NCBI GenBank assembly: GCA_965655095.1
Contig: OZ296652.1
Location: 102,238,001 to 102,302,000 of the forward strand
Origin: Haplodiscus bocki
Lineage: Eukaryota
Length of the DNA stretch: 64,000 bases
Direction of reading: 5' to 3'
Every line of letters starts with the position of its first letter. Position 1 is the first letter of the stretch. The notes beneath the pieces were generated by a model. It saw only the letters and a program-made list of their open reading frames with translations. It was not told the DNA's origin and searched no databases. Position numbers and translations under genes: made by a program. Positions 22,149 to 62,390 of the stretch are shown here, piece after piece.

Positions 22149-23687
22149 TGTGAGGAGCCTCGTCTGTGTGTGAATCAATTGAATGAGGGGATTGAGAGAC
22201 GGAGGGTCCCACTTCAGGATGAGGATCATCCTGGGAACGATCCTCATTTGGTTCCTGGTTTTCCACGTTTGTGTTCCGGCTTGTTCCCGGAACGGTTCCG
22301 GAGTGCGTCCCTATCTGTGGGTTCAGAACAAACTCGTCTAATTTAGACAGAGCACCCAAAATGTGGACCTCTGTCCTGCTGAACTCCTGGGACAGTTTTC
22401 TAGTGACTCTGCCTTCAATCTCCTCAGAAACTTGTGTGATATATTCCTCGTTAATACTAGGAACGGACGTGTTTCGTGACTGGCCGTTCCTAGGATGTTC
22501 CTCTAGTGTTTCTCTTGTAACTTTCGTTTGTTCCTCAACGTTGCCATCTTTTGAAGGGAAAATGCTACGCAGTTATGAAGACTTAATTAGGTTTTATTTG
22601 TCAATCAAGTTGAGATTATAACAAAAAATGTTATTGTTTACAATAAACAACTAGTCGCAATCAGTTTAGTCAACTGATAATCAAAGTGATATAAGGAATT
22701 GCTTTTCTAGTACTTTCATTTCTCCTATTTATACCTTTCGCTTGGCGGGAAACAAAATTGTTTACACGCCAAGTAAAGGTACAAAGTAGGGAAAAGTACT
22801 TTAATCATAATAATTACAAAAGAAATATGCCAATTCCGGCGGGAAATAAACATCTTTCCTTTGATTTCTTCCTTTACAGACCGCGTCTTTTCCATCTTTC
22901 GGCGGAAAATATACGGTTCTGATCAGTCGGAAATTGATATCAAAGTGCTTTTTCCCGCGCCGACACAATAAATAATAACATAAACAAATGATCAGAAAGA
23001 TTTTCCATAAAAGGAAAGTAATGAAAAAAGCACCAGAATTAGGTAAAATGCACTAAAATAATCATAGAAAATCATCATTACATGCTTGGTAATACTATTG
23101 CATTGATTAAATTCACTTTTGGAACGAAACTAGGCTTTTTCCTAGTCCGTTCCTCGTTACTACAGGCTAGTTCCTCATTTTGGCCAAAGTGTTCTGGAAC
23201 GACTACGTAGCCGCTTGTAGCACTGCTCGCCGCAGTGCTACTGAGAAGAATGAATTAGGTGGCTACGTAACCGTTCCGTGTTTGTTCAAATTGACACAGC
23301 ATAAAAGCACAGCGAATTGGTTGAATTTCTAATGACGTCACCAGATCGGTAGCGACCGAACCCGTACGGAACGTATATTCACTCCTAGCCTAGAGAAGCT
23401 ACTAGGTAAGTACGTTTCTGTTCCGTAGCGGTTCCGTCCCAAATTGGTTCAGTACACGGGAGAGCTATGTATACAATACGTTGAATTTATGTGAAAATTT
23501 ACTGAGGAGTGATACGTGTTTGATACGTATCAACTATATGTAAAGTTGTTGATATAATACCGCAATATTATTATATGAATGGAAAAGGAAAAGTCTTAAG
23601 TTTCGATACAGTATTTTCTAATTTTAGGCAATCCGGGGATGTCTTTTTCTTTCTTTATGCCGTAGGCTTCGCGGATGTACTACGACA
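22149..23687 (-). mobile_element. Solo LTR (1539 bp) of the Gypsy family found at 51030-62379
   Basis: Minus strand begins TGTCGTAGTACATCCGCGAAGCC and ends ...CCTCACA. Flanked by a 5-bp duplication GTATC (22144-22148, 23688-23692). Colinear with 60566-62379, including the MATLRNKRK...LGALSKLDEF.LNPQ reading frame. Confidence 0.9.
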
Positions 23688-50829: not shown

Positions 50830-51029
50830 NNNNNNNNNNNNNNNNNNNNNNNNNNNNNNNNNNNNNNNNNNNNNNNNNNNNNNNNNNNNNNNNNNNNNNN
50901 NNNNNNNNNNNNNNNNNNNNNNNNNNNNNNNNNNNNNNNNNNNNNNNNNNNNNNNNNNNNNNNNNNNNNNNNNNNNNNNNNNNNNNNNNNNNNNNNNNNN
51001 NNNNNNNNNNNNNNNNNNNNNNNNNNNNN
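50830..51029. other. Assembly gap (200 N)
   Basis: Run of N. The Gypsy pol starts immediately after it, so the 5' LTR, gag and protease are missing. Confidence 0.99.
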
Positions 51030-54000
51030 TGACCAACACAACGGAATCACCATATCTTATTAAAAAACACACACAGATTGCAGAATTCTCCGTGGTTACT
51101 CCGGAGCAATCCAAGCACATCAAACCAGTAGATATGGCAATCCTTAGTATGATTCCACAAGACGATCCTGACCTGACTGCCTACTTAAATGAACTTCTCA
51201 GAACGAGTAAACCCGAGCAGCAAGACATCACATTCTGGTTCCCAACACCTGAAAATCCTGGACAGCCTGAGGATCATACTCCAATACAGACAAGAATCGT
51301 CAATGAATTGAATGAACTCAAGGACAAGGAAAAACTCAATCCACAAGAGAGCACAGAATCTCGAAACAAATTTCTCAAACGATTTGATTGGACCGATACA
51401 CTTCTTACCGAAACGGAAAAACAAGCAATCGAAGATATCCTGGTTGAATATCATGATATATTCGCCAGACACAGAATGGATATTGGAATGAACACGGAGT
51501 TCAAGGTGAAATTAACTCCCAAAGACGACAAAGCCGTATATAGCCAAAATCTACCAATGGCAATCCACCTGAAAGAAGACCTAATTGTCGAATTAGCCCT
51601 AATGCACAAATATGGAATCGTCACAGTACTGCCTTTCTCCAAGTACGCGAGCCGCATATTTGGACAAAGGAAGCCCAACGGAAAATTACGTCTCCTTGTG
51701 GATCTACGAAAAATCAACAGCCTGATTGCAGATGACTACACTAACAACAATCATCCAGTTAGCACTCTGTCAGACGCAGCACAACACTTGGCAGGGAAGT
51801 CATTATTCTGCAAACTAGATTGCTCAGAAGCTTATCATTGTTTGCAGATGGCGGGACCAACGCTCAGTGGAGATGCTTGCATTCAATTTTGCTAGCAGAA
51901 CTTTTGCCTACAAAAGACTTGCACAAGGTCTCAGCAGATCTGTGTCTGCATTTTCAAGTTTCATGCGTGAGTACTTGGACCCAGTCGTCAAAGCTGACCA
52001 ATGTGCTCAATACGTAGACGATATTGGAATTGCAGCCAATAATGCAACGGACCTTACCCGGAATATCCGAGCAGTCTTCAAGTGTATTCGCCAAGTAGGA
52101 TTGAAGCTGACAATTGAAAAATGTCATTTTGGAGTCAGACAAGGTGAGTTCCTAGGACGAACAATTTCATCAGAAGGAATCTCACCGCAAGCTCGGAAAC
52201 TTGAAAATTTCCTTGACAAGCTTAGATTCCCCAAATCAAAAAAGGCATTACAGCGATATCTGGGTTTCGTGAACTATTACAGAAACTATATTCCCAGAAT
52301 GGCCGAAAAACTTAATCCGTTCTACAAATTGCTTAAAACGGAAGTGCCAATCAATATTACGTCGGAATTGAAGGAAACATTTGATTCAGTCAGTAAAGCT
52401 CTGTGATGCGTGTGATTTAGCATTGAAACAACCCATTCCAGGAAAGCAACTCGTCTTAATGACGGACGCTAGCTTCAGAAGTGCTGGATATGCCCTAATG
52501 ATTGAAGACAATCCCGATCAGAAAATACAGTCAAAGCGGGAAACGTATGCCCCCGTGGCATTTGGCTCAAAAATTTTCTCCCCTGCATAACTAAAAATGT
52601 CCATATACTCAAAAGAATTTCTTGCAATATATATGGCATTTCTTGAGTTTGCCCACATTTTGTGGGAAGCAACAAAGCCAACGATTGTCCTAACAGATAA
52701 CAAATCTGTCACCCGTTTTTTCCAAACAAAAGCAATCCCACCAGCACTCTGGAACGCATGTGATTATGTATTACAATTCAACTTAAAATAGCGCATATTG
52801 CTGGATCAGTCAACACTGCAGCTGACTTCCTCTCCAGACTTGAACTTAAAGTGACGGAGAAGATACGTCTCAAAATCAGGGAGGATATCTTCACAACACC
52901 TATCGAGGTGACCACCTCTTCCTCTGGTGTCGCGGATGAGGAACAAATTTTCTTCACACACGCAGATGACGGTAAAGAGTCAGAAGAACAAACCCTTGAA
53001 CGAAAAGAGCAATCACGACAAAATGCGAAGCAATGGGGCCGCGAATGAAGAATCACCAGCTTTAAAGACAAGTGTGAAAGAATTCACAAAGATCGACGGG
53101 AACACTACGTCGTACTCCATGAACGGAATTGAAGCAAATGCAAGAATACGAGTAGAGCAGGACGTTGATCTTGTGCTGAAAAACTTGAAACTCAAATTCC
53201 TAGGCCAACCGTACGATGAAGTGTTAATAATGACAGACTCAAGATACAAAAATTACAAAGCAAATGAGGACCGCATAATTCTTAAAGATGGCCTATTATT
53301 CAGGAAATATTTTGGAGAAACAGGTAGCGTCAAATACTACCAAATTCTCATTCCCAAGCAATTAGTTAAAGAAGTTCTACGCAGCCTGCATGGAGAATTT
53401 GGCAAGCACCCGGGAATTTTTAAAACAATAATTGCTTATAGGGAAAAATATTATTTTCCGAAAATGGCGCAATTAATCAGGGAATGGGTCATGTCATGTG
53501 AGCAATGTATTAGAGAATCACGTACTGATCGTAGCCTCACCCGCCCTCCCCTGCAAAACCCAAACGAACACATTACTGCGCCCGAAGATGCCATGCAAAT
53601 TGATTTGGTGCCGGAATTACCGCCATCTGGTGGCTATGAAAACATTGTGACAGCTATGGATGTGTTTTCCCGCTATTTATTTGCATACCCGACATCAAAT
53701 CAGGACGCCAAAACAATTGCTAAAGTCTTAATTAACATCATGACTAAACACGCCTACTTACCGACGACGCTCATCTCAGATAAAGGTACAGCCTTTATGT
53801 CACAAGTAATTAAAGAAGTGACCGGCGTCCTTGGCATTACTCTAAAGCGCGCCACCACGAAGCACGCTCAAACAATTGGGCTACTTGAACGATATCACGC
53901 GTCAATCAAACAAGCATTGAAGATTGAGACAGGCGAGCGGAGATCATTGTGGCAGAAATATATTAACATTGCAGTTCTAAATTACAACACTTCCTACCAC

Positions 54001-54836
54001 ACAAGTATCGGCTGTGAGCCAAGCCGGGTCTTTCACGGCAGAATTCCCTATAATGTATTGGATTTAAAATTGGGAATTCGCCCACAGCAGCAGCCCATTC
54101 CTACTTCGCAAATTGCCCAAGAAGTTCTTGAACAAACAGAAATGATCCATCAAGATGTTCGCAAGAATATAATGCAAGCATACATTAAATACAAGGCCTA
54201 TTACGACAAAAAGGCCAACGCTTCAAAACTTAAGCAGATTACGTATATATCTTGCAGCCGAAAGCGGATCATCAAGGCAGCAAAATTCCGTTCACAGAAT
54301 TTCGATGGGTTGGCCCGTATATTATTGAAAAAGTATTGCCAAATAATAATTATCTGGTACGCAAAATTGGCACCAACAAGACGCAAGTGCTTCATCGAAT
54401 GAGAATGCGTCAGTTCACACCCCGCCAACCACCAGCTGACATAACAGTCAAGCCGCAAGAATACAAATCCGATCCTGAAGTGAGTCTTAATCACGACGAT
54501 TTATATGCAAGAGCGTGGGAGTGTGATTATGAGCAGCCAATTTTTGACGTTGAGAACGATAATAAGGCGCCGCCCAATCAACGAGAAATTCCAGTACAGT
54601 CTGATTCTTCGACGGAGGAAATTAGGAACACACCAGGAAATCCACATCTCTGTTCCCCAGAGATTTTCCCCAATACAGACGAGCTCGGTGACGTAACAGA
54701 TACGTGTCCACATATGGAACCTGATGTGGTGACAAGCTCGGAACAACCGCAAAATAGCCCGACCAACCCCCGCAGCTCCAAGTACAACTTACGTCATAAC
54801 CCGAAGCCGGACTGCAACGACGACTACCGATACTAA
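51030..54836 (+). pseudogene. pol: Gypsy pol (RT, RNase H, integrase), recently disrupted
   Basis: KPNGKLRLLVDLRKIN, KLDCSEAYH, RLAQGLSRS, YVDD (~52011); RNase H TDAS..YSKEFLA..TDNK; integrase LHGEFGKHPG..CEQC, QIDL, ISDKG, LER and GPY motif RWVGPYII. Lesions near 51852, 52403, 52588, 52783, 53037 and 54237. Confidence 0.95.
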
Positions 54837-55244
54837 CTTGTCAGCACAATGAGTGTGTTCTACGTAGCGCACACGTAGCCGTTCCACAAATTCAAGAAAC
54901 GCGCTACGTGGCACATACGTGGCTGTCTAATCTTTCCACATAGCTCAACTGTAGCTAATCCCTGGCAACTTACTCAACTGCTACACAGCAGGAACTATTC
55001 CAAAACACGGCCACCAATACTAAATTCATTCATATTTCCTTTTTCGCTGCATGGGCCTACTTCATTTCATTTATGATTCATTATTTCTTTTTTTTTAATT
55101 TTCTGTTATGGCTCGATCAACTATCTACATAAATATCAATAAACAATTAAAAAGAGGGAAAAACAGTTTCAAAGCGCCGATGACGAAAACAACAGCAATA
55201 AAAGAGTACGGAGCAATGTCCATATGTCGAAAACGAAGCACCAA

Positions 55245-58200
55245 TTATGGCAGTCCACCCTGGAACACAGGAGCGGCTCTCCGTTTTCTCTCACTTCGCC
55301 GCAACTTCTTGCAAGATTGCTGACGGCCCAAAGCGGCACTAAAACTCATATCCTCAACAAGACGATGTTGCTGAGATCTTGGAGGGGGACTTGAAATTTC
55401 GAAGCGTCTTTTCACAGGGCTTCGACTGATGCTTCTCTTTCTAAATTTCCCTGAAGAAACACGCAAATTGCTAGGACCAGGAACACTAGCCGAAGGAGCT
55501 CTCACGGGAACATACTCCACCCGTCCCTCTTCCACAACATTACAAATCCTCACACCGGACCGCGATGTCGAATCCTCGGATGACGGTCTGATTCCACCCA
55601 CCGCATACCACTGCTCTTGTGAGTCCTTCAACATCCTCCGCCGATCAAGAGCCTCACTCACGCACCCACAGACGTCAGCTACCACCTGGGAATGAGACGT
55701 AGTCCCCACGTGGCTCCATGCTCGAAGACAGCGCTGTGTGTGATCCTGTCAGAGATAGCTGCAGATTCAGTCAACATCGCAATCCCTGAGTCTGAAAAGA
55801 AGCTCCGCTGCGTAAAATGCGGACTCCTCACAAAGTCCTGTACGCAAAGGATCGCACTTTGCACCTCGTCCTCACAAATCATCACCCGATCCAAACTGAT
55901 GATGAACCGCCCACCATAAGTCACTGGTCCGCGCACAATGAGAGCTGTCAACTGGAAAACCTGGGAAAACAAATCAGTGTTTTCCAAATAACCAAATTCA
56001 AACCTTACCACATTGGTCACGATACATACTTTAAACAGATGCTGACGAGCACGGAAGCCAGCCTGCGAACAGCAGAACGACAGGACATCACCTATGTCAG
56101 GGCGGCTCCTCGTTGAAGACCGCTCCAGCTGTCGTTGCTCCTGAACGAAGGACTGGTATTGACCGGCAAGCCTGGATCTCACTGCCCTTGATCCACCCGC
56201 GCCCTAACAGACCGTCCAGCAGAAGACTCAGCAAATGAAATGGCGCATGATCATCGCCCCCGATGACGATCGCTGGACAGAAACAGCTTAAACCGTGTCC
56301 AATCTTTGAGCGGGCAGCCACAGTTGACAACACGGATGTGGTAAAATCTTCCAAAAATCTACGGGCATCTCGTTGAAATTCCCGCTTCAAGTACGAACTC
56401 CCAATCTTGTTGAGAGCTGCCAACACCCGTGTCCCGGCCAGAAACTCCCCATCAGAAATTGGATGAAACTTGGAGTGATTGGGCAATACATACTCGTCCC
56501 GCTGCTCCACAAGCGGCAAAGTGGACCCCTGCTTGATCTTCTGTAGCAGACAGTAGATGAACCGAGCCAGTTCACCAAACATGTGGTACCCGGAGTCATC
56601 TGCTGTTTCACGATGGATGAAATTTTTTGCAACAGAAACAGAAACATGTATCACAGACAGGGCGACATTGACTGCGCCCTGCTTCAATGACAAATTTCAC
56701 CAACAAGCAAACATGGCACCAATGCGGAATAAAACGAGTGTGCTCCGATAAACGTGCATACATAATCCGGAGCCACCACGTACCAACACGTATCATTGGA
56801 ACAAAGTGATGATGATACTTACAGATTTCTAGAAGGAGATGAAACAGCCTGAAATTCATCCTGGCAAGCTGGTCATGGTACAAGTACCCGTCCATCCCCT
56901 TCTTCTAAAAACAACAAAGAGAATGGACATACATTGATGAAGAAGGCAAATGCCCACAAGAAAGGACCTTACCACAAGACTATCTCCTCCGTCTTTTCGG
57001 CCAGTCTCTTTGAGGTACGACACGATCAAGGGCCATACCCCAACAATGTTCGCCACCACATCAACCAGGCCCGGCATGGACAGCTCATTGGTGATGATGG
57101 CCTTGCGCAAAGCTGGACGAGAAACCATCCAGTCTCGAGTTTCTGCTCCTTTCAGGCGGTTCACAATAAATTCAGTCAGTGAGAACGGGTCGAGGCTCCC
57201 AAAGACAGAAGAAGCAGTGCGCTGAAGGCAACGCTTCAATAGCCGCAGATCGAAAGTCGGGTATTCAACTAGTTTTGTCTGGTACCCACTTCCAAGATAA
57301 TTCGCGAATGCCTCGGCTAGCACATGAGGACCTCCGTGAAGAGACACCACAGCAGCATCGGGACCAGCAGCATCCAGAATTTTGCCCAAAACTGTCGCCT
57401 CCAAGGTGGTGTTGGCACTAAACCGGTTCAGCACGGCAACGCAGACACGTCGGAATGTGGACCTCTCCCACGTCCTCACCATGACCCAGATTTCTGAACC
57501 ACGTTCCTCAAATTCGATGCTGCACCTCCCGTAACTCTTGACCCAGCCAAAGACTCGAGCAAGAATGCGGGGGAACATTCCGTTCAAGATGATCGACTAA
57601 AACACAGCACCAATAAGCCAGTGAACACGTACGCGTGGTGATAACAAGCAGGACAATACCAACCAGCACCTCGTCCCGGGACCATGCAACTTCAATGTTC
57701 ACCCGGCTAGCAATCAGAGTGAACTGTGACCACAACTGACTCACCAACTCATATTGTCCACCCAATCGCAGAGTCTCAATGAGCGACGACACCTTGAAAA
57801 CCACTGGCAGTGTCGCATCAGGGGCTCCGGACTCGTCTATAATGAGATCCTCGGCAAAGGGATACTCGCGATCCCGAACTACCAGACAACCTCGAAGGAT
57901 ATGCTCTCGTCGCCGCTCCAGCTCACCTTCACTGAGGGGGTTTCCTTCGAAATCTAGCACCCGCCACACAGGAGTTTCCAGCCTCAATCACTGGTCACGG
58001 GCAAAGTGCCTAACCCCCTGATAGTGTCGCAAGATCTCATGAGGGCCATGTGTCAAAACCGAAACATCTTTGCGACAGACCCGACAATAGAAATGGCTCG
58101 GTTTATCAGCCGCGTCAGTAGCCCCAGTCACGAAAAACTGACCCACCTCGTTCGCTCCCCACACCTTCATCTTGAATGTGCGCTTCGAACGCACACGACG

Positions 58201-59496
58201 ACGAGAGTGACTGGCCTCTGACTCATCGGCACTCGAGTCACTTGTCTCAGGAGCATGCACACCAGAACGTGCAGTACTCTGCCCCAATTGTTGGAGAACA
58301 GCATCTAATTCTGTGAACAAGAAAAAACAATGAAGAAGAAGGAGGCTAAAAACTCGTAGAACGCAAAGAGAAGCACTTACTTCCCAGCAGCGGTTCCAAA
58401 ATCTGCGATCTCTCTTCAGCGCAGACCGAGCGGCATAATGTCACCAGCTGATGACCAGTAGCGTTCACGGGAGTGACGGCAGGATCAACAGCAAAATGGT
58501 CTAAACAATTCAACAAATGAGGAACCCACAAGGAATCAAACCGAGAGTATCCTCATTTGAATTCAATAATACCATCGTCAAAGGCCTGCTCCAGCATCAC
58601 TCGGCTCCGCTCGTGGCTCCCGAAATCAACTGGGCCCGGCTCCTGACACGACAGCGGAACAAGACGACGCGTGATGACGGCCTGCCTTCGCCTTCTCGAG
58701 CGCCTCACCTCAGCCTCCGTTGACACATCGCCAGCCTCCGAAAAACATGGACCATCACTAGTTGCACCTGGAAAACAAAATCATAGTGGATGGTCGCCAA
58801 CTTGCCAAAAGAAAGCACAATAATGCTGCAAACTTGACGGAATTTCCATGGGAGCACCAGTAGAAGCGCCAGTAACCTCCTCATAGGACGTAGAGCGCCC
58901 CACAACAAATTTGGTTCGGGAACTCACCGGAACACCACTTTCCGTCTCGTGAGGGCGATCATCAAGCTCTCCCGAAGACCCAAACACTAAAAACATAAAA
59001 GCCCCATGATGCCATCTTCATGAAGAGGCGCGCGCTGTATACTAGCTAATGGAGAATATAGATGGCCACTATATTACTCCTCAAAACAAAGCTAAAGGAA
59101 TATGAAGAATGACGACTAACACAATGGCAAATCAGGAACACCGACCATACCCTCCAGAACAGTTTCTGGCAACGGATCTGCACGCCGCAGAATGTCAGCC
59201 AAAGTCAATCCCTCTGACTCACTTCCAACCTCTTCCTCCAGGCCACCCATGATGTCGATGAAACTCTCTCCTTCACTGGCTTCTTCAGTTCGACTATCGC
59301 TTGCTTCGATCTCTCCTAGAATTCTCCTCACGCACTCCTCTCCTTCTTGGATGTTGACTTTCGAATTGGGGACAAATTGCAAATTCGGGACAACGCTACT
59401 CTCGGGGACACCCTCATCGATTGCCAGTTCTGGCTCGTCACTGGCGACACTCCCAAAGGGAGACATGACCCTCACCTCACCATCAGATTTGCTCAT
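55245..59496 (-). pseudogene. Nine-exon antisense cargo gene: acidic N-terminus, BED-type zinc finger and catalytically substituted hAT-transposase-like body (~1200 aa)
   Basis: Exons 59496-59151, 58986-58834, 58767-58573, 58500-58381, 58310-57664, 57596-56973, 56904-56823, ~56754-56030, 55960-55245. Introns are GT-AG (intron 7 acceptor damaged) and exons 1-7 join in phase. Zinc finger FYCRVCRKDVSVLTHGPHEILRHYQGVRH. Lesions: TGA at 57988-57990 and frameshifts near 56695, 56160 and 55720. Confidence 0.8.
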
Positions 59497-59922
59497 TATT
59501 AGCAACAAAGAACGACGTGGCAAATGCAAATGGCTCATAATATCGCTAAGAGTTAACCACTTAACACATGGTGGATTTACATATTTATTCATAAAATTCT
59601 AATTATTTTATTCAAAAGTCTGATTAATTTGTCTGCCAGCAATGACGTCAGCATGCATTTTGAAGGACATCTTGAGGAATCACACTCAAATATTCCTTGA
59701 AATTAAAATCTCCATTTCGAGATTTGTTTACATCTCATTTAACTTAAAACTGCACTCTTGACTTTCTACCTTCCATTGATGCAGAGCAGCGGCGCGGGAA
59801 CATCAAACGAAATCCCGCTTCAGGAAAGTGCACACGCATTACCCGCGGTACCGATCACTCTTCCATTTTCATTTTTCGATATCAGTTACCTGCTTCATCA
59901 ATTTATAATCTTGATCAGTAAA

Positions 59923-60645
59923 ATGACTTCAAATATTTCGATGGCTTCTAATGACTCTGATGTGTTCTATGTGGAACAAAGCTCAAGCGAACTAAGTCCA
60001 CAAAGAAACAATACGCCCAATATTCTCAATTCAACCGAGATATCCGAACAGCACACGGCACAGATGCCCTCAATATCGTCAATAGCATCCCCAGAACCAC
60101 GAATCTTCACAATAGATGACGATTCCAATGAGCCTACCATGCCGTATGGATTTGGACGGCAGCTCCCGATTTTTCCCCCAAGCCTAAACGACTTGAACCT
60201 GCCGCCCAATCCCTTTAATATCCTTAATACGACGGCAGTTGTAACGTAAACACAGGATAACAACGAACAATACAGCCCGGAATCACCTGAGCCGTCACTG
60301 CCATCGCCCATCTCAACACCACCCATGAATGTCAGTGCGTATAACAGTTGGGAAACGCCCCATACCACAACTGACGATAACACTTTTTACTCGGAAGACG
60401 AACCACGACGAATCTACTGGACATCTCCCCTGGGCGAAACGTTTGAATCCGAAGATGAACCCCGGAGGATCTACGTCCTATCACCGAGTCCCTCACCGCA
60501 GCCATCACCTCCACGATGGCAGAAAAACTTGAGCCTGGTAATGTCCTTTCCAAAAGAGGGGGGAGTCTTGCAGCACATCTGCGAAGCCTGCGGTCAGACG
60601 ATCGCCTCAACAAAGGACATCCCAGGTCCATCTAGCAGAAGTTAG
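59923..60645 (+). pseudogene. Sense accessory ORF, Ser/Pro/acidic low complexity (~240 codons, one internal TAA at 60247-60249)
   Basis: ORFs 59758..60249 and 60325..60645 are in the same frame. SEDEPRRIY is duplicated. The C-terminus KEGGVLQHICEACGQ is read across the PPT into the LTR. Confidence 0.6.
60552..60565 (+). other. Polypurine tract
   Basis: AAAAGAGGGGGGAG lies directly before the sequence matching the 5' end of the solo LTR. Confidence 0.85.
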
Positions 60646-62379
60646 AGACAGCAGTGATACTTCAAACAGACACATATATATATATAAACTCTTAAACTTA
60701 TAGCCCTACTCATTTAATTTATGAACTCATTTAAGTATAACTTAAGGATACGTAGTAGTTACGTATCCATTTAATACGTACGCATGTAATTTATGTGGAC
60801 GATACGTAGTAGTTACGTATCGTCCCATAACATTTATTTCATGTAAAAAGCACGTACCTGATACGTGTAATTCTGGTGAACTGATCCTTATTGGGACGGA
60901 ATAGATGCGGAACAAACGAATATTCACTGTATTTTTATATTAATTTAAGTGCTATTTTTTATAATTAATCTAACTAATTAATATATAAATCGACCTTTTT
61001 GATTGTGCAGTAATCTATTTAGATTGACAGCTGTAACAAGTTTTCAATAGCTTAACTATTAGAACAGAGCTTGACTTTAAAAGTGAATATTTGTTCCGTA
61101 TGTGTTCCGTCGTAACTAATCTGGTGACGTCACTAGAATTTCAGCCAATCCGCTGTGCTACTACTCTGTTTCACTTTGACGGACACGGAACGTCTACGTA
61201 GCCACCAGAATCATTCTCCTCAGTAGTACTGCGGAAGGCAGTGCTACAAGCGGCTACGTAGCCGCCACGGAACGCTCCGGCCAAAGTGAGGCCTGAGCTA
61301 GTAGAAATGTGGAACGGGCTAGGATTTACGCCTAGTTTGTTCCAAACAGTGGTTTTAATCGACGCAGCATGTAATCATGAATCTTTTATATTGTACACCT
61401 CGTATTTCCATACTCTAAACTATTTTTCAGCTGTATTATTTTATTTATTCCCAGTATGGAAATGACTTTGATCTTTGTTTATGTTATTATTTAGTGTGTC
61501 GGCGCGGGAATAACCACTTTGATGTCCATTTCCGACGGATCGGACCGTACTTTTTCTTTTTCCTGTCGAAAGATGGAAAGGACGCGGTCCGTGAGGGAAG
61601 AAATGGATGGAAGGGTGTTTATTTCCCGCCAGAGTCGGCATCATTTTCTTTGATAAATAATATGATTAAAGTACTTTTCCCTATTTGTACCTTGATCTGG
61701 CGTGTAAACAATTATGTTTCCCGCCAAGGAAAGGTATAAAAGGAGAAATGAAAGTACAATATTTATTATATAAATTGTAGCTTTTGGTACTGTACCTTTG
61801 TAAAATATTGCAACTGTTGCATTTTGTTATTCTCTGAAAATCACTTTCAACTGTTGACATCATTGAAACTTTATTCCTCAGATTGAGAGGCTATCAGCTA
61901 ATCAGAACAATAAATGATAAATTCAGTCTTTATCACTGACAAGATTTTCCCTTCGAGAAAAATGGCAACGTTGAGAAACAAGAGGAAATTAGCGGCAGTT
62001 TCAAGAGAAGCTCCCGATTGCAGTAGCAGCAGTAGAGGGCGGACCGTACTTGACCCTGAGTTATCCCAGGATTACATCTCCCAGATCTCCGAGGAGATGG
62101 AGGGGAGGTTAACTACGAAACTGTCGAAGGAGTTTAACAAAACAGAGTCACGTATCTTGGGTGCTCTATCGAAACTTGACGAGTTTCTTCTTAACCCACA
62201 AGTTCGGACTTGTTCCGTAACCGCTCACGGAACATCCCGACACTCTAATTTAGAAAACTGGGAAACTCATGGGGATCGCTCCTCAAACGATCCTTATCCC
62301 GAAGGGGGGTATTTTCCTCACCTCTCAGGACAATTCAATAGTTCCGAGGCAGAAATGGTGACTGAAACCTTCCCTCACA
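60566..62379 (+). repeat. 3' LTR (1814 bp)
   Basis: Begins TCTTGCAGCACATCTGCGAAGCC (solo LTR: TGTCGTAGTACATCCGCGAAGCC) and ends CCCTCACA (solo LTR: TCCTCACA). Homology stops at these points. Confidence 0.88.
61120..61745 (+). promoter_or_regulatory. LTR promoter motifs: CRE-like TGACGTCA (61125), CCAAT (61145), E2F-like TTCCCGC sites (61501, 61622, 61717), TATAAA (61735)
   Basis: All are retained in the same order in the diverged solo LTR (23333, 23316, 22951/22839/22745, 22728). Confidence 0.55.
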
Positions 62380-62390
62380 AGAATGACTGA
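61962..62390 (+). CDS. LTR-encoded ORF, probable Gag N-terminus (MATLRNKRKLAAVSRE...)
   Basis: Open from ATG 61962 through the LTR end (62379) and stops only in flanking DNA. Conserved at the protein level in the solo LTR (minus strand, ~22547-22149). Confidence 0.6.
   Translation: MATLRNKRKLAAVSREAPDCSSSSRGRTVLDPELSQDYISQISEEMEGRLTTKLSKEFNKTESRILGALSKLDEFLLNPQVRTCSVTAHGTSRHSNLENWETHGDRSSNDPYPEGGYFPHLSGQFNSSEAEMVTETFPHKND

Follow-up and report, generated by a model that had tools for sequence, protein, structure and literature searches.

A 64,000-nucleotide (nt) stretch of the Haplodiscus bocki genome (contig OZ296652.1, positions 102,238,001 to 102,302,000 of the forward strand; here called the window) contains a copy of a Ty3/Gypsy retrotransposon in which a large, intron-bearing gene runs antisense to pol. 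We estimate the probability at roughly 55% that this gene is accessory to a high-copy Gypsy family, was derived from a hAT-type transposase, specifies a noncatalytic, DNA-binding factor, and is dead in the present copy. It is located on the minus strand, extends from an ATG at 59496 to a stop codon ending at 55245, and consists of nine exons and eight introns (Table 1). Pol and the gene are arranged tail to tail, the latter lying between the pol end and the polypurine tract, in a region between pol and the long terminal repeat (LTR) that spans 5.7 kb. An earlier reading, made from the letters of the window and a list of its open reading frames (ORFs) and referred to here as the sequence-only reading, had proposed a nine-exon minus-strand gene at this place, and comparison with other copies of the element confirmed it. 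This comparison drew on c1, c5, c4, and c8, four full copies in the genome of the window (L031-L038, of which L037/L038 represent c8), and on L039 and L040, a divergent pair of elements in a public assembly of metagenome type. In the divergent elements, the antisense protein is 35 to 50% identical and pol ~60% identical to the respective sequences of the window family. The tail-to-tail position was found in all four own-genome copies and in both external copies, and it is on these six of six that our statement on the arrangement is based.

The introns were located by aligning the window with the six copies. At eight sites, similarity of the coding sequence broke off at a GT and restarted past a pyrimidine-rich run ending in AG; between these splice points, length was free and the sequence showed no conservation. 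When the same exon columns were applied to c5, c1, and c8, all eight introns were of the GT..AG type in each of them, and c8 spliced in this way yielded a single open frame of 1,164 codons that ended at the common stop. Exon lengths were essentially fixed across copies, with exon 7 measuring 82 nt in all copies and lineages compared, and intron lengths drifted from 190 to 550 nt for intron 7 and from 60 to 123 nt for intron 8. Some copies have intron 8 in frame and free of stop codons, and its sequence is unconserved. Judged from these alignments, both the antisense gene and its nine-exon model are far beyond chance. We infer splicing of the gene from this comparison of copies.

The encoded protein of ~1,160 amino acids begins with an acidic part, which is followed by a C2H2/BED-like zinc finger and an RNase H-like domain; a long helical region then leads to a basic tail. 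The N-terminal part of the protein, encoded by exons 1 to 4, contains 51 Asp and Glu residues in 272 amino acids, plus short basic runs. The zinc finger pattern Cx2C..H..H is present and conserved across copies. ESM features placed the exon 5 finger near zf-BED and zf-C2H2_12 at 0.89, and Pfam returned sub-threshold hits to other C2H2 models only. The AlphaFold model of exon 6 had a mean predicted local distance difference test (pLDDT) score of 67, exceeding 80 for residues 10 to 80, and its elements followed the order helix, beta1-beta2-beta3, alpha1, beta4, alpha2, and further helices. This modeled topology is RNase H-like, as in transposases with an Asp-Asp-Glu (DDE) triad and in integrases. 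The end of the model with the lowest pLDDT (blocks of ~38 to 39 from residue ~230) falls inside the translation of intron 6.

According to the sequence-only reading, the three catalytic positions of a hAT transposase are occupied by E, G, and G, and the CxxH motif is gone. With regard to the first two positions and to CxxH, this was borne out. EFEE is found at the end of beta1 (57515-57504), the place of the first catalytic Asp, and HGG follows beta4 (57338-57330), where DDE transposases carry the second. In an alignment of 40 family members, nearly all had EFEE or a variant at beta1 and G or S, not Asp, after beta4; the canonical triad is therefore incomplete family-wide. No CxxH was found at the expected place in the protein. 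The third position was ambiguous, as described below.

We consider it probable that the protein originated from a transposase or integrase-like ancestor with an RNase H fold, and somewhat more likely than not that this ancestor was a hAT-type DNA transposase. The latter assignment is suggested by structure-based comparisons. In a Foldseek search of the exon 6 model against PDB, the six best matches were all chains of the Hermes transposase (E values of 1.7e-3 to 4.8e-3, probability of up to 0.98, ~240 aligned columns), and other RNase H-fold proteins ranked below them. A shape search of the ESM Atlas returned seven named rows for exon 6, six of which were hAT families aligned over residues ~5 to 246 with TM scores of 0.36 to 0.47; the named clusters were DUF4371/FAM200-ZBED5 RNase-like, ZNF862-like, ZMYM1/FAM200, ZBED1-type hAT RNase-H, and ZNF618 (Hermes-type). 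The single row from a Mutator-like element (MULE) covered only the core (residues 1 to 118). ESM features pointed to DUF4371/FAM200-ZBED5 RNase-like clusters for exon 6 (0.81 to 0.86) and to Dimer_Tnp_hAT and FAM200-GTF2IRD2-like clusters for exons 8 and 9 (0.84 to 0.86), so that the leads for exon 5, exon 6, and exons 8 and 9 are colinear with the domain order of hAT transposases.

Several results weigh against a hAT derivation. The Foldseek E values lie above the cutoff of 0.001, and none of the ESM scores reaches 0.9. Pfam gave nothing at an E value of 1 or less for any exon or for 74 family members, and sequence-profile searches of the protein against PDB produced no matches. The C-terminal half was unusable for structural comparison, as the AlphaFold model of exons 8 and 9 reached a pLDDT of 37. 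The third catalytic residue, which had been read as G, is ambiguous: many lineages have G-E-x-F and the window subfamily has GGRF, and the register relative to the hAT E-R-x-F-S motif is off by one residue. For direct profile comparison, a hAT profile of 29 members (DUF4371/Dimer_Tnp_hAT) was built from a hAT gene of the same genome (L045) and its relatives. Aligned to it with hhalign, the exon 6 and exon 8/9 family profiles gave probabilities of 0.1 to 0.2%, and scores of 16.6 to 18.8 versus 17.3 to 20.0 for a reversed profile (local, low-mact, and global modes) indicated no signal. The sequence-only reading had aligned the protein to hAT motifs block by block; each peptide block it quoted can be found in the exon translations, but since the hhalign scores do not exceed the reversed control, that alignment has no statistical support. 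VIA-align detected generic RNase H-like cores only, in both modes. As for the claim of hAT descent as a whole, a borderline structural likeness to Hermes was obtained, together with the Atlas and the colinear ESM leads, and profile similarity was not.

The hAT gene used for the profile is an apparently intact, DUF4371-type gene of 622 amino acids (C10; L045:454-2322, minus strand) with DDE, CxxH, and ERSFS motifs, and it is one of only eight DUF4371 matches in the genome. No profile similarity between it and the antisense gene was detectable.

Another possibility is that the accessory gene is genuine and under selection but has an RNase H-like domain that comes from elsewhere, be it another DDE superfamily, a duplicated integrase or RNase H of a retroelement, or a host gene. 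The hAT likeness would then reflect nothing but a shared fold and a common type of zinc finger. All profile methods being negative and hhalign scoring no better than its reversed control speak for such an origin; a MULE row also appeared in the Atlas search, and the ESM scores are within a range that shuffled sequences sometimes reach. Against it, three separate segments point to the corresponding parts of hAT proteins in the correct order, the Hermes matches in PDB extend beyond the core, and the hAT rows of the Atlas search continue over the helices that follow the core, where the MULE row ends. We regard a non-hAT origin as less likely, and as the strongest alternative to hAT descent.

The sequence-only reading had raised the question whether the ratio of nonsynonymous to synonymous substitution rates (dN/dS) is below 1; it was, amounting to 0.15 to 0.19 for the spliced gene between subfamilies (c8 versus c5, c1, c4, and the window copy) at a dS of ~0.4. 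Exon 8 was the most constrained exon, with a dN/dS of 0.07 to 0.09; values of 0.12 to 0.16 were obtained for exon 5 and exons 6 and 7, and of 0.22 to 0.28 for the acidic N-terminal part and exon 9 (N-terminal part, 0.25 to 0.28). For gag and pol of the same copy pair, dN/dS was 0.06 to 0.18, and dS was similar to that of the antisense gene. This match in dS argues that the gene evolved with the element and is not a recent acquisition. Taken at the level of substitutions, the data show a gene under purifying selection that has been coevolving with gag and pol. Within a subfamily, dN/dS rose to 0.6 to 0.95, the value predicted by neutral decay of dead insertions. Four lesions are seen in the window copy. 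Exon 5 has a premature stop just past the zinc finger (57990-57988), frameshifts of 2 nt and 1 nt affect exon 8 (~56161/56160) and exon 9 (~55721/55720), respectively, and intron 7 has lost its acceptor dinucleotide (56634-56633). As it reads, this copy is dead and cannot make the protein.

It is improbable that the gene is a mere passenger, that is, a DNA transposon or host gene which landed in one ancestral copy and has been hitchhiking without serving the element. The element does tolerate a long region between pol and the LTR, and the gene contains stops or frameshifts in many genomic copies. A useless passenger would, however, decay in an active lineage, whereas here the low dN/dS between subfamilies is accompanied by a dS that equals the value for gag and pol; exon lengths and splice sites persist even where pol is only ~60% identical, and the defects of single copies fit neutral decay after insertion, as the within-subfamily dN/dS indicates. 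Nor is any terminal inverted repeat (TIR) or target site duplication (TSD) left. Inverted 11-mers between the flanks of the gene were no more common than in shuffled sequences, and none of them had matching 8-mers alongside, which gives no TIRs or 8-bp TSD flanking the gene beyond chance. A nested transposon was rejected on these grounds. The sequence-only reading had regarded TIRs with an 8-bp TSD, together with absence of the gene from other Gypsy copies, as marks of a one-off insertion; neither was seen, and all six copies carry the gene. The comparison thus supports the view that the Gypsy family carries the gene as an integral part, conserved and intron-bearing, on the antisense strand.

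Four read runs (X1 to X4), the kind of which is unrecorded, cover the stretch and behave like DNA unitigs. Their joints matched none of the introns: neither splicing nor intronless DNA copies were seen. That there is no antisense gene at all, its exons being chance open frames or the result of constraint on the sense strand, is nevertheless very improbable: the window copy itself yields no open frame and the four runs show no splicing, but chance cannot account for a natural copy that, freed of eight GT..AG introns, has an open frame of 1,164 codons, no long sense-strand ORF spans the region, the pattern of synonymous and nonsynonymous changes fits the antisense frame, and public data hold 576 protein-level relatives (among 1.8 billion representatives, all of them short fragments of the same family).

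The contigs of X1 to X4 were also seen to skip parts of the window. Over positions 55200 to 59700, recurrent skips of 68 to 70 nt and of ~600 nt occurred, e.g., from 59343 to 59412 and from 59019 to 59619. These are probably deletion variants among genomic copies.

With hAT descent preferred, the history and function of the gene can be pictured as follows. A hAT-type transposase gene would have entered an ancestral element at the DNA level and subsequently lost its terminal repeats and its catalytic triad. Since the introns are antisense to the genomic RNA of the element, the spliceosome cannot remove them, and every new copy therefore inherits them. A promoter inside the element, in the 260-bp spacer that separates the antisense ATG from sense ORF3, may drive transcription; this spacer holds a perfect palindrome resembling a cyclic AMP response element (TGACGTCA, 59643-59650) that is kept in four of five aligned own-genome copies. 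The transcript would then be spliced, and polyadenylation could take place near 55099 by means of an ATTAAA signal. In the nucleus, the product might act as a noncatalytic DNA-binding factor in the service of the element, for instance on the LTR, with possible roles in LTR transcription, escape from silencing, or choice of target.

A candidate site for the zinc finger is the hexamer CGGAAC/GTTCCG, which occurs eight times in the 1.8-kb 3' LTR versus 26 times in the whole window. We tentatively extend the proposal to a retrotransposon that domesticated an intron-bearing hAT gene as a noncatalytic, sequence-specific binder of its own LTR, with CGGAAC/GTTCCG as the possible target, acting in transcription, antisilencing, or guidance of integration; in this specific form it is speculative and must be considered unlikely as yet. 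A second cluster of seven hexamers was noticed at 22273-23436, in an inverted LTR-like sequence (22208-23383) with 72 to 81% identity. That sequence is probably a solo LTR of a related family.

The closest counterparts in arrangement are found in plants. Ty3/Gypsy elements of the Tat/Retand type (Retand, Grande with gene23, and RIRE2) have accessory ORFs (TRP28, PF04195) that run antisense in the interval separating pol from the 3' LTR. These ORFs are carried by most copies, occur in distant lineages, and have been proposed to encode nuclear DNA-binding regulators (PMC11963269). The gene described here shares with them the conserved antisense location within a long interval from pol to the 3' LTR, the occurrence in most copies and in distant lineages, and a role as nuclear DNA-binding regulator, which is a proposal in both cases. 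In contrast to the plant ORFs, no exon matched TRP28/Transposase_28 (PF04195) in Pfam, and the gene is three to five times larger (~1,160 amino acids), with eight spliceosomal introns, a zinc finger, and an RNase H-like domain. Antisense genes are also known from retroviruses, namely, HBZ of human T-cell leukemia virus type 1 (HTLV-1), APH-2 of HTLV-2, and ASP of human immunodeficiency virus type 1 (PMC11963269). In these cases too, a retroelement specifies a protein close to its 3' end on the strand that does not encode gag-pol, and HBZ is likewise spliced and nuclear. However, the retroviral proteins are unrelated (basic leucine zipper proteins or small ORFs), are transcribed from the 3' LTR, and have at most one intron, whereas an internal promoter in the spacer is presumed for the gene of the window.

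hAT transposases and their inactive, domesticated derivatives (Hermes; ZBED, ZMYM1/ZNF862-like DUF4371, GTF2IRD2, and FAM200) display an order of finger, RNase H-like core, helical region, and C-terminal part that the antisense gene appears to share, and loss of catalytic Asp is common to the domesticated genes and the antisense gene. The latter differs in that no profile similarity, Pfam hAT domain, CxxH motif, RW motif, TIR, or 8-bp TSD was detectable, and in being located inside a retrotransposon rather than being a host gene or an autonomous DNA transposon. In the literature searched, no hAT-like antisense gene of a Gypsy element was described; the coverage was incomplete and does not prove novelty.

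What is known of antisense accessory genes in LTR retrotransposons comes mostly from plant Retand/Tat elements and a few retroviruses, and the genes still lack an assigned function. A large, strongly constrained gene with multiple introns, whose family numbers thousands of copies and includes recent insertions, offers a tractable system in which function can be studied. In public assemblies, it also accounts for orphan fragments, thousands in number, that are annotated as "hypothetical protein." Should the hAT origin be true, a class I element would be able to capture and repurpose a class II transposase, and antisense orientation would provide a general route by which an intron-containing gene passes through reverse transcription. 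If the domestication reading also holds, the gene would represent exaptation of one transposon by another, for which the literature searched contains no description.

The host element occupies positions 51030 to 62379 of the window and, as comparison with full copies of the same genome (~15.5 kb) revealed, is truncated at its 5' end. Similarity to the full copies begins directly after a run of 200 N (blastn). Both LTRs are visible in the full copies, and the window copy lacks the 5' LTR because of this gap. Pfam searches of the window ORFs placed the pol domains on the plus strand in the order PF00078, PF17919/PF17917, PF17921, PF00665, and PF22938; this order, LTRs bounded by TG..CA, and a polypurine tract preceding the 3' LTR identify the element as Gypsy. 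In the window copy, pol is broken over several frames. LTR pairs of full copies were 96 to 99.6% identical, and some insertions are therefore recent. The family is very abundant, as exon 6 alone retrieved more than 6,500 first-look candidates from the 1.5-Gb assembly.

Table 1. Features of the Gypsy copy and its antisense gene, in window coordinates
Feature	Position	Strand	Basis or remark
Run of 200 N (assembly gap or mask)	50830..51029	.	Removes 5' part of element (5' LTR, gag, protease)
Gypsy pol remnant: reverse transcriptase, RNase H, integrase (H2C2, rve, p58 C-terminal)	51030..54836	+	Pfam, ORF list, blastn
Candidate polyadenylation signal, ATTAAA type	55094..55099	-	~146 nt downstream of antisense stop; putative
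Exon 9: conserved C-terminal region, basic Ser/Pro-rich tail; stop codon 55247-55245	55245..55960	-	Copy alignment
Intron 8, 69 nt, GT..AG (123 nt in L040, 60 nt in L039)	55961..56029	-	Copy alignment
Exon 8: all-helical (low-confidence model)	56030..56632	-	Copy alignment; dN/dS
Intron 7, 190 nt (205 in c8, 550 in L040)	56633..56822	-	Copy alignment
Exon 7, 82 nt	56823..56904	-	Copy alignment
Intron 6, 68 nt, GT..AG	56905..56972	-	Copy alignment; listed ORF of 246 amino acids reads through in frame
Exon 6: RNase H-like core (~57527-57291), then helices	56973..57596	-	AlphaFold, Foldseek, Atlas search, family alignment
Intron 5, 67 nt, GT..AG (68 nt in L040, 93 nt in L039)	57597..57663	-	Copy alignment
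Exon 5: C2H2/BED-like zinc finger (~58095-58015) and helical region	57664..58310	-	Copy alignment, ESM features
Intron 4, 70 nt (76 nt in c8)	58311..58380	-	Copy alignment
Exons 1 to 4	59496-59151, 58986-58834, 58767-58573, 58500-58381	-	Copy alignment
Introns 1 to 3, 164, 66, and 72 nt	59150-58987, 58833-58768, 58572-58501	-	Copy alignment
Spacer, candidate divergent promoter (putative)	59497..59757	.	Between antisense ATG and ORF3
Sense ORF3	59758..60645	+	Between antisense gene and 3' LTR; two pieces in this copy; overlaps polypurine tract and LTR start
Polypurine tract	60552..60566	+	Immediately 5' of 3' LTR
3' LTR, 1,811 bp, TG..CA ends	60569..62379	+	Comparison with full copies

Sense ORF3, which had no family match in Pfam, is rich in Ser and Pro and has a CxxC motif at its end; in copy c8, it is continuous over ~300 amino acids. 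The reading frame of gag (N terminus MATLRNKRKLAAV...) was found at 61914-62390 on the plus strand of the window and begins ~450 nt before the end of the LTR. The gag start codon is therefore inside each LTR, and gag of full copies extends out of the 5' LTR. At the locus of copy c8, three LTR-like repeats with 98.6 to 99.6% identity were present, a sign that two elements may lie in tandem or be nested there.

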